A stretch of 64,000 nucleotides of DNA, taken from Octopus bimaculoides (lineage: Eukaryota). The translations under genes were made by a program, and so were the position numbers. Under the pieces are notes generated by a model. That model worked only from the letters and a program-made list of their open reading frames with translations. It searched no databases and had not been told where the DNA came from. This document shows, piece after piece, positions 19,001 through 22,000 of the stretch. Location: contig NC_069000.1 in assembly GCF_001194135.2 (NCBI RefSeq), forward strand, positions 40,726,922 to 40,790,921, given 5' to 3'. The stretch's first letter is position 1. Each line of letters opens with the position of its first letter.

Positions 19001-22000
19001 CATGCAGTTTTGAACTAATGCTACCCTTCATGTGTCTTTTATCAACTCAATACTGATATCTAAACATGATGCAAAGCCACAGATTTGTAAAGAGAGGTAC
19101 AACTGAGTGAATTAACCCCTGCATCAATAGGCTTTTGGGTTGACTTCAATGCATGCATTTGAGCAAGTACCTTCTACAAAAGCCTCAGGTCGACCAGAGC
19201 TTTGTGAGTAGAATTTTGTGGGTACTGTGCACAAACCTGTTTTATGTATGTATGTATATATATATATATATATATATATACAAACATTATATTACATACA
19301 AAGATAAGAGGAATGACCAGCAAAAGTGGACTCCTATATGCTAGAAATAGATGCCGAATCATCTAACCACGAAAAAATATGTTCCCAGTAAAAAATTAGC
19401 GACACAACAGACTGTAAAAGGGCAAGACAAATGAAAAAATACTAAATAAAAAAAAACGATTAACCTACGCACCATTCTTTCCTCTTATTTTTGTATGTAA
19501 TATAATTTTAATATTCAGATTTTTTTTAATATGCTATACCACTGGTTTTAATTGATTAATATCAATTTCTACCCTTATTAATAAATGTTATATATATAAA
19601 TATATATATGCATTTGGTCTACTATCCTGTTTCACTGTTTATGCTCTATTCAAGTATGTTATCTAATTTAGTGGTTTGACAGATAGAGATCAATAAAATA
19701 ATAACAAGCTGAGAAAATTGTTGAGCTGATAAGATCAATTAAACCTTGAAATTGGTACCCCAGCATGACAGTACTTGAATGAATGAAACGAGTAAAAGAA
19801 TAACAACACCAGCTGCAATAAGTTTTGCTTTCATACAAGTAGGAATCCGTGGATGTTTAAGAAAAGGAGAAATGTTAAGTGTAGTTTTCTGTTATTTTCT
19901 ATTTCATCCATTCTTCTAGTTATGGTGACATCAGAAATTTATGATGCCAAGCAACAACTTTGTACTTACCATGTAGCAACATGGTTAGAAGAGGTGTCTT
20001 TGTGCTGTTTTTGATCTGAGAAATTAGTAGGTTGCCATACTGGAGAACCTCACGAACGGAATCACCCCATTCAATGATACCATTTGGAAAGAAGGAGTTG
20101 AAGTTGAAATCGCTGCGACCAAATGCCTGTGATGGAAGAGAGGAGGACAGTGAGAGGAGTTTGAGTGAATTGACAGAGATAAACATCAGGGTTTCCACAG
20201 TACACAAAATTCTGGTTTTGACATTGTAAAATTCTGATTAAATGGAAGAGAGGAGGACAGTGAGAGGAGTTTGAGTGAATTGACAGAGATAAACATGCAA
20301 TCCATAATAACTATCAGGGTTTCCACAGTACACAAAATTCTGGTTTTGACATTGTAAAGTTCTGATTAAAATTATGGGAAGATTTCCCTTCAGCAATGAA
20401 TGATTAATACTTTTTAATTCAATTTAAGACTTCAATTTTCATTTTATATAAAATATCACAGTCACAAATTTACAGCTAAATGTTTACGCTTTGAAGTTTG
20501 GCAATTACAGCTGGGTACCTCAAAGGATGGGCTAATTGCTTGAAGAATGAACAGTTTGTCATTTACAACAGTATTGCATTATATCCATGTTCAAGATGCT
20601 TAACTTTCAAACTTTCCATTTCACTCACTTCTAAATAAGTACCATGAGTAGACCATGCTTACCACAGCAATCAGTAGAAAAACTTTATAATTGACAATTG
20701 TTTAATTAGCTTGTAGTACAGAGTTCAAAGTCTAACATGAATATGGCTTGAAGAGAAATGAGTTCTGTCAAACTGTTTCTAAATACACTAAATGAAAACA
20801 AGGCAAAATCAGACACTAATTGTGAAAGAAAGAAATGTATGTTTCTAGATATTTTCCCCTAACTAGGTAATACTTGATACTTACTGGTTTGATATCATCC
20901 AATGAGCTTAGGAAATCATCTTGGGTGATTCTGACATTTTCTGCCTCTGTAGGATCAATTTCTGCTTTATTGGAGCCCTATATGAGCACAGAGAAACAAT
21001 ACAAAATGTAGTAAATGTTCTTTATTATTATCTTAATAATTGTGGAGTATATTCTTTTGTAATCAAAGATTTTTGTAATTTTTTTCTGTCACTGATTCAT
21101 CCGACAAGTTTACATGAAACAAAACTTTAGAAACCATTGCAAAGACACGCATGAAGGAACAATGTGAAAACAGAAGTAAAAAAAAAAAAATAAATACCAT
21201 GTCCAGTCTTAAGTGACAATGAAATACACAAATAAGAACATTGAAATGAATATATTAACAATGTACCATTAATTCTTTGAATATTGACAAAATATGTACC
21301 AGAAAATCTACACTAAAGTTGAGGAAACTTCCTCACCTGCTCCTCTATACCTTCTTTTACAACAGGTATATTTTAAAAGACAGCTAGGGTTAAAATCATT
21401 TCCCTCTTTTTTTTTGTAGTTATCCATCAATAGTTAATTCAACACCTCAATGTTTACACACTAAGGTAAGTCTTTACCTTTTAAGATTTTGTTTTCTTAA
21501 TAAATACAGAAGTTACATAAATAGTTTTCAAGTTTAAAATTCATTATTGAAAACTAAAATTTAGTAAGGAAATAATATTTGATATTCAAACAAAATGTCT
21601 AGCTGCTGATAAAAGCTAGAAAAGGAGAAACATTCCAGCATCTTATAAGTTTTCATAATTCTAGATAAAATTCCATTTCCATTCAGTCTTCCTTAATAAT
21701 AATAATTCTATAAAAAAAAAAAATAAATAAAACAGCGAAGGGAAATTACTCAAGGTGAGATGTACAGACGGATGTGTAGTGGCGCAAAATTATGGCTGCC
21801 ATTAAGGAAGTACAATCTACGCATGCGCAAGGGACTTGCCTTCCCCGAAGCCCCTCGAGTGCGCATGCGTAGTAAAACCAAAAGCGTTTCTTTCACTTTC
21901 TAACTCTATTCAGCATGATACCTTCGACATGACAGCTACTTGCTCTTAACCTTCCAATGCCGATTACAAATTAACCAGCGGTTGCCAGGCTGAATGACAC

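Follow-up and report, generated by a model that had tools for sequence, protein, structure and literature searches.

A promoter-like CpG islet in an intron of the octopus NSF gene, probably an intragenic orphan promoter-type islet and possibly transposon-derived

The NSF locus

The stretch of Octopus bimaculoides DNA analysed here (64,000 nucleotides of contig NC_069000.1, assembly GCF_001194135.2, positions 40,726,922 to 40,790,921 of the forward strand; hereafter the window, numbered from its first letter) carries on its minus strand the gene for the vesicle-fusing ATPase NSF, as established by motif and open reading frame (ORF) scans, protein searches and tblastn. The NSF exon peptides matched only NSF/Sec18 in the protein searches, with a best identity of 58% and none from a close relative of the source organism, and sixteen exons were placed by tblastn between 42.15 kb and 15.4 kb, with the D1 Walker A motif at ~29.6 kb, the D1 Walker B motif at 27.4 kb and the D2 Walker A motif at 18.8 kb. 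A phase-0 intron of 1.96 kb, bounded by the two NSF exons listed in Table 1, contains the subject of this report, a short CpG-dense islet with promoter-type motifs. An initial annotation, made from the letters of the DNA, had assigned this islet to NSF intron 14; its position within NSF and the minus-strand orientation of the gene were confirmed, the intron being number 13 or 14 by exon count.

CpG content and extent of the islet

Ten CpGs are found in the islet (at 21736, 21769, 21783, 21820, 21826, 21846, 21856, 21862, 21868 and 21885), giving at a GC content of 0.50 a CpG observed/expected ratio (o/e) of 1.05, which is near expectation on a depleted background. For comparison, the ratio is 0.26 in the NSF gene body, 0.35 in the NSF exons and 0.16 in the left part of the same intron. 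The edges are abrupt, with no CpG in the 235 bp before the islet (21500-21735) nor in the 190 bp after position 21979 (21980-22168), and a density of 10 CpG per 155 bp is reached by only six patches in the window. The sharp CpG cluster in a CpG-poor gene body, as first described from the letters, therefore holds. Four of the CpGs, a hypermutable dinucleotide, are unbroken within the 26 perfectly matching bases of the inverted-repeat arms described below, in surroundings with an o/e of 0.26. Since a full CpG complement has been kept inside DNA of such low ratio, the islet is either protected or young. In octopus, 5-methylcytosine (5mC) has been reported to accumulate along the bodies of genes with broad expression, while promoters and transposons are without it (PMC9476566). 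The retained CpGs of the islet suggest an unmethylated state in the germ line.

Motifs within the islet

The 9-mer GCGCATGCG occurs twice in the window, against 0 expected from 100 shuffles, and both copies are located in the islet, one on the minus strand (21820-21828) and one on the plus strand (21861-21869). These NRF1/EWG-type cores are spaced 42 bp from centre to centre and are embedded in 13-bp arms, CTACGCATGCGCA and TGCGCATGCGTAG, which are 100% complementary and 30 nt apart, so that the perfect inverted repeat of two such sites proposed in the initial annotation was recovered as described. The 8-bp core CGCATGCG is self-complementary, and any two copies of it automatically form an inverted repeat; extra information resides only in the five flanking bases (CTA..CA / TG..TAG), with a chance of about 1e-3. 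All three NRF1-like sites found, two in the islet and one in the CpG patch at the 5′ end of NSF (see below), read GCGC-NN-GCGTAG, and this common form explains the matching extra flanking bases of the repeat. With respect to the NRF1 consensus (YGCGCAYGCGCR / STGCGCATGCGC), the islet presents TGCGCATGCGTA twice and fits 10-11 of the 12 positions of STGCGCATGCGC; unlike the consensus, the second half-site is GCGT, not GCGC, in both islet sites as well as in the 5′ patch. CpG methylation blocks the binding of NRF1. A literature search on NRF1 motifs, in cephalopods as well as in transposons, yielded nothing specific.

The second component of the islet is the palindrome ATGGCTGCCAT, read earlier as ATGGC-T-GCCAT, which was found at the expected place as its sole occurrence in the window. 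YY1-type sites, of which it contains two cores back to back, are found close to transcription starts and often overlap ATG codons. Two more promoter-type motifs are present (Table 1): an ETS-type core and an ACTACAnnTCC box, the latter weak by itself because plain ACTACA is common in the window.

A matching composite at the putative NSF promoter

Upstream of NSF exon 2, the only non-repetitive CpG-dense patch is located at 63308-63529. Directly beside it, the codons ATG TCT AAG are followed by a splice donor, which allows a phase-0 join with the exon that starts at 42165, for which the tblastn match runs from 42151. Judged from this fit of ATG and donor, ATG TCT AAG joined to exon 2 represents a plausible NSF N-terminus.

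A composite search was performed over both strands of the 64 kb, using the islet strings TTATGGCTGC and TCTACGCATGCGC as templates, with at most two mismatches allowed in each and a gap of 11-21 nt. Besides the islet itself, a single match was obtained, and this is located in the putative NSF 5′ promoter patch, at a distance of 61 nt upstream from the presumed NSF ATG. The two composites share strand and order, and differ slightly in spacing (N16 in the islet vs N14 in the 5′ patch). Composition-matched resampling of 63280-63530 (20,000 rounds) produced the composite 8 times and the NRF1-like half alone 471 times. The window contains ATGGC[GT]GC only at 21792 and 63356, and CTACGC/GCGTAG only at 19465, 21817, 21867 and 63379, three of these four positions being in the islet or the 5′ patch. 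Local and global alignments of the islet with the 63.3-kb region revealed no homology outside the two motifs, which points to a shared promoter grammar rather than to copying; the possibility that the islet is a duplicate of the NSF promoter was rejected on the same grounds. The recurrence of the composite in the NSF 5′ CpG patch, and nowhere else in the window, represents independent support for such a grammar, and ATGGCKGC-N14-16-CTACGCNNGCGC is put forward here as a testable candidate promoter grammar for this genome.

The 5′ patch has further features of its own. A canonical YY1-type sequence, AATGGCGGCGGC, is located at 63355-63366 and overlaps the TAATGGCGGC element of the composite (63354-63363). 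On the plus strand of the patch an ATG opens the frame MAAAHYSLYASAVV, followed by a stop; given this frame, the patch (63285-63530) could also serve a divergent gene beyond the end of the window.

Edges of the islet and a candidate inserted block

At 21734 exactly, the GC content steps up from 0.18 to 0.48; near 22000 it drops from 0.48 to 0.24. On the basis of these edges and of flanking direct repeats, a candidate inserted block of 469 bp was delimited with the islet at its 5′ end, next to a shorter alternative of 294 bp (Table 1). The 9-mer AAATAAAAC is present in four copies in the window, of which three are located at 21725, 22028 and 22204. About 29 signatures consisting of a repeat plus a tail were counted in the 64 kb, so that one within 3 nt of the islet edge corresponds to p roughly 0.001-0.003. 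As the repeat-bounded block has the islet at its 5′ edge, the islet may have arrived by retroposition of an element with its own internal promoter, and a retroposed origin is possible in view of the edges and flanking repeats. Insertion and promoter function are compatible, as a retroposed element with a host-like internal promoter could act as a cryptic promoter.

Table 1. Features of the islet, its intron and the putative NSF promoter (positions in the window; a slash marks a splice junction)
Feature	Position	Strand	Remarks
CpG-dense promoter-like islet	21736-21890	.	10 CpG, o/e 1.05, GC 0.50
ACTACAnnTCC box ACTACACATCC	21770-21780	minus	sole ACTACA..TCC match in the window
Composite TTATGGCTGC-N16-TCTACGCATGCGC, YY1-like then NRF1/EWG-like	21790-21828	plus	one of only two matches in the window
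ATGGCTGCCAT palindrome, two back-to-back GCCAT (YY1-type) cores	21792-21802	.	source of both MAA ATGs
GGAAGT ETS-type core	21806-21811	plus	read from the sequence
NRF1/EWG-type site 1, left inverted-repeat arm CTACGCATGCGCA	21817-21829	.	
NRF1/EWG-type site 2, right inverted-repeat arm TGCGCATGCGTAG	21860-21872	.	
Candidate inserted block, 469 bp, islet at 5′ end	21735-22203	plus	GC edges, flanking direct repeats
Shorter alternative block, 294 bp	21734-22027		flanked by 9-bp repeat
Left direct repeat AAATAAAACA (10 bp), candidate target-site duplication	21725-21734	plus	
Right direct repeat AAATAAAACA	22204-22213	plus	
AATAAA (22161-22166), 20 nt, A/G-rich tail (22187-22203)	22161-22203	plus	directly before right repeat; 469-bp option only
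NSF exon upstream of the islet intron (GLPDEKG...MNSLIK)	22937-23125	minus	donor AAG/GTAATT, phase 0
NSF exon downstream of the islet intron (GSNKAEIDP...DDIKP)	20885-20977	minus	acceptor atatag/GGC, phase 0
Putative NSF exon 1, coding part, ATG TCT AAG/GTCAGT	63285-63293	minus	phase-0 join to exon beginning 42165
Matching composite TAATGGCGGC-N14-TCTACGCCAGCGC, putative NSF 5′ promoter patch	63354-63390	plus	sole other composite match in 64 kb

No further copies of the islet were found in the window, CpG-decayed versions included, and 0 matches were obtained for the exact hairpin pattern in metagenome, viral and prokaryote collections and for a 21-mer in metagenomes, collections that are not known to hold DNA of the source organism. 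No terminal inverted repeats (TIRs) of a DNA transposon or miniature inverted-repeat transposable element (MITE) were detected at the islet, the only strong inverted repeat being the internal one (21817-21829 / 21860-21872). The islet also has no tRNA-derived head of a short interspersed element (SINE): ARAGORN reported none, no A or B box was recognised by eye, and there is no similarity to the SINE family of the window.

Several other element types were considered by eye and discarded. A solo long terminal repeat (LTR) lacks TG..CA ends, a Helitron end would have too long a loop and no CTRR, and a primer-binding site at TGGCGC does not fit. A Pol III gene ending in a T-run was discarded as well, as internal T4 runs would stop transcription early.

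Comparison with known systems

The islet resembles the NRF1 (alpha-PAL/EWG/P3A2)-type, YY1-associated, TATA-less and often bidirectional housekeeping promoters in several respects: its sites are paired and close to STGCGCATGCGC, an ATG overlaps with a GCCAT/ATGGC core, CpG reaches its expected frequency, an ETS core is found nearby together with an ACTACA box, and the layout is that of the putative host-gene promoter. Unlike such promoters, it is located deep in a gene, is flanked on neither side by a recognisable first exon or ORF, and spans only ~150-250 bp.

A second resemblance is to the internal promoters in the 5′ untranslated regions (UTRs) of non-LTR retrotransposons, of which the L1 5′ UTR carries a YY1 site. 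The motifs of the islet are comprised in the first ~140 bp of a block that ends in AATAAA and an A-rich tail, has A-rich direct repeats on both sides and runs antisense to the host gene. Unlike non-LTR retrotransposons and their internally deleted non-autonomous derivatives, however, the block has no second copy, ORF remnant or partner long interspersed element (LINE) in the window, and its bounds are ambiguous.

Finally, the islet is comparable to cryptic or alternative intragenic promoters (orphan CpG islands), as it carries YY1-class motifs within a gene of the type that is constitutively expressed and methylated over its body, may be insert-borne, and has short isoforms or antisense RNAs as its predicted products. 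In Nematostella, the loss of gene-body methylation has been reported to expose intragenic, often transposon-derived YY1/NFY-type sites, leading to short-isoform or antisense transcripts (PMC13345969). Those cases were identified by CAGE (cap analysis of gene expression) and the assay for transposase-accessible chromatin (ATAC) after demethylation (PMC13345969), whereas the octopus islet is known from sequence alone and has kept its CpGs. The islet is probably an intragenic orphan promoter-type islet, possibly transposon-derived.

Function and origin of the islet

With regard to function, we favour, at about even confidence, the view that the islet is a compact module at which ubiquitous transcription factors of the promoter type dock, acting as an internal promoter-type element of cryptic or alternative nature. 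The promoter-like module of the initial annotation is in this sense supported at the level of sequence, by the NRF1, YY1 and ETS motifs, the ACTACAnnTCC box and the composite in the NSF 5′ patch, while the nested gene that it was proposed to drive is not. The factors marking the NSF 5′ promoter would occupy the intronic islet as well. Its core is a one-way composite in which the YY1-like ATGGCTGCCAT is followed 16 bp on by the NRF1/EWG-type GCGCATGCG, with a mirror-image second site 42 bp further. Either factor occupancy or a recent origin would account for the full CpG complement in a CpG-depleted, presumably methylated gene body. If the islet has the same orientation as the 5′ promoter, transcripts would be expected on the NSF sense strand, running through the remainder of the intron into the D2-encoding exons; from the other strand, short RNAs terminated at polyadenylation signals would be expected. 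On the minus strand, cryptic donors that score are present at 21477 and 21336 (the latter strong), both ahead of the first polyadenylation signal (21026). Plus-strand products would be short, as an AATAAA at 22029 precedes the only scoring donor (22096) of that strand.

A more demanding version, in which the islet would be a genuine internal NSF promoter with the same YY1-like plus NRF1/EWG-like grammar, giving a 5′-truncated sense messenger RNA for a D2-only fragment or an antisense RNA, is considered unlikely. If the islet does fire, transcription of NSF would also start internally, a short way upstream of the D2-encoding exons, under the same factor pair as the main promoter, and this would yield either a truncated isoform or an antisense regulator, or else cause transcriptional interference. 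This would represent a second, independently regulated output of NSF, a key ATPase of synaptic vesicle fusion, and the islet would offer a concrete example of small unmethylated islets persisting inside methylated invertebrate gene bodies.

Several observations weigh against this reading. Scans for donors, polyadenylation signals and ORFs found no credible first exon downstream of the islet on either strand. The comparison set for the composite consists of a single promoter, which was itself deduced from an ATG-donor fit rather than from transcripts, and the composite was defined after the islet had been viewed, though without tuning on the second site. Of the five other CpG-dense patches in the window, three overlap repeated elements, and this base rate favours mobile DNA as the explanation of a CpG patch. 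Direct repeats of 9-10 bp are common in this A-rich intron.

According to an alternative that we regard as possible but clearly less probable, the islet is passenger DNA without a host role. It would be the internal promoter at the 5′ end, or the 5′ UTR, of a retroposed element or of a processed transcript copy, 469 (or 294) bp long and antisense to NSF, and its CpGs would survive through youth or through the escape of transposons from methylation. The compositional edges are sharp, the 10-bp AAATAAAACA coincides with the left edge and recurs at 22204, with AATAAA and the A/G-rich tail before the right copy, and the low chance of such a signature within 3 nt of the islet edge is also in its favour. 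Intronic retroelements are usually antisense to their host gene, as is this block. The same intron harbours a clear hAT-type MITE, other CpG patches in the window are SINE or transposon copies, and the reported lack of 5mC on octopus transposons (PMC9476566) is in line with the account. On the other hand, the islet is present as a single copy in the 64-kb window, and decayed copies are absent as well; neither a TIR or LTR nor a reverse-transcriptase remnant, a tRNA head or A/B boxes were found; and the frequency of A-rich repeats, together with the three copies of the 9-mer, leaves the bounds ambiguous. The composite match to the putative NSF promoter would also be left unexplained, unless the element mimics host promoters. 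Should the islet be a mere retroposon passenger, it would be an unremarkable case of intronic mobile DNA that carries a promoter. It is less probable again that the islet is neutral, i.e. a cluster that arose by chance or is a relic, neither bound nor active. Its small size would fit this, but two exact 9-mers against 0 expected, the four hypermutable CpGs kept within 26 perfectly matching arm bases in surroundings of o/e 0.26, and the composite common to the islet and the 5′ patch all argue against it.

The palindrome gives rise to an ATG on each strand, and from this the initial annotation had derived a candidate nested gene encoding a mitochondrially targeted peptide beginning MAA. Part of the derivation was reproduced exactly, namely the MAA peptide, the GA/GTAATT donor and the in-frame join to 21383-21337, which gives the 33-aa peptide. 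The ATGGC context on both strands, the in-frame join of first and second exon and the strong donor of the second exon can be cited for the gene, but the remaining evidence is contrary. The ORF opened by the minus-strand ATG at 21802 has only 18 codons before the stop and the plus-strand MAA ORF 26, and the longest ORF of the intron has 69 aa. The first donor (TGA/GTAATT) scores below the threshold of 6, compared with 7.5-7.7 for the flanking NSF donors, and the second exon (21383-21337) has, next to its strong donor, a poor acceptor without a pyrimidine tract. The two-exon product enters NSF exon 14 as GLQ-stop, ending three codons in at 36 aa in total, whereas the first MAA exon joined directly to NSF exon 14 is out of frame (intron phase 0); an in-frame D2-only NSF starting from the MAA ATG is ruled out by this mismatch of frames. 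Six-frame peptides of the islet had no match at E up to 1 among 5.8 billion proteins, and a Pfam search with the 33-aa spliced peptide and the two longest islet ORFs gave no match. The peptide has a net charge of +5 and 5 Cys in 33 residues; its composition is by itself not diagnostic of a presequence, and with so many Cys the idea of a mitochondrial presequence is not compelling. These results show that coding potential is absent; in our view the islet is not a gene, the nested-gene reading is close to refuted, and we would assign it hardly any probability. The MAA reading frames would be by-products of the ATGGC core in the YY1-type site.

It is very unlikely, finally, that the functional unit is the 56-nt hairpin at 21817-21872, acting as a structured intronic RNA (microRNA-like or another non-coding RNA) or as a DNA cruciform. 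Its perfect 13-bp stem is extended by ~8 imperfect pairs, and the fold z-scores are -6.4 as DNA (71 nt) and -2.65 as RNA (171 nt, minus strand). Most of this symmetry, however, follows from the presence of two copies of a self-complementary transcription factor site, and with ~22 paired positions and no basal stem the hairpin is too short for a canonical primary microRNA, a candidate rejected for this reason. The flanking 150 nt give no structure signal (z = +0.2 to +0.8). Rfam yielded no match at the gathering score in the whole window and nothing beyond noise for 21000-22600 at E up to 10, and no tRNA genes were found in the window by ARAGORN. A C/D small nucleolar RNA at 21900-22000, an Sm site and a telomerase template were also considered by eye, and none fits.

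Repeats and other features of the window

Two repeats are located close to the islet. An 18-nt direct repeat (A12TAAATA; 21179-21196 and 21712-21729) encloses ~515 bp just to its left, which may represent a poly(A)-tailed retroposed insert. The hAT-type MITE of the islet intron is positioned at 22553-22816; its TIRs (CAGGGGTTTTCAAACT) are 16 nt long and its target-site duplication (ATTTAATC) 8 bp.

A tRNA-derived SINE family with the B-box-like core GTTCAAATTCC is represented at 61745-61962, 40960-41189, 41863-41995, 2664-2831, 54455-54692 and 57708-57863, among other places. Its copies match up to ~8-13 other places in the window and have CpG o/e values from ~1.0 down to 0.25, suggesting that CpG-dense patches of the window are often young or unmethylated SINE copies. 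Another CpG-rich repeat is present in two copies: the one at 14701-14985 (o/e 0.73) is found shortly downstream of the last located NSF exon (15.4 kb), the one at 49866-50163 (o/e 0.54) in intron 1.

Remnants of larger elements were also observed. An ORF fragment with an integrase zinc-binding domain (38239-38760, minus strand; PF17921, E = 2.4e-11) represents an LTR retrotransposon remnant in an NSF intron. The ORF fragments at 32278-32848 and 208-1223 appear mariner/Tc1-like by eye (NPMDYNMWD-type motifs), with no Pfam match at E up to 0.01. Finally, a tandem duplication of two ~110-130-bp units, 85% identical, is located at 20132-20370, in the intron just upstream of the NSF exon acceptor at 20126, where it doubles the branch-point and pyrimidine region.

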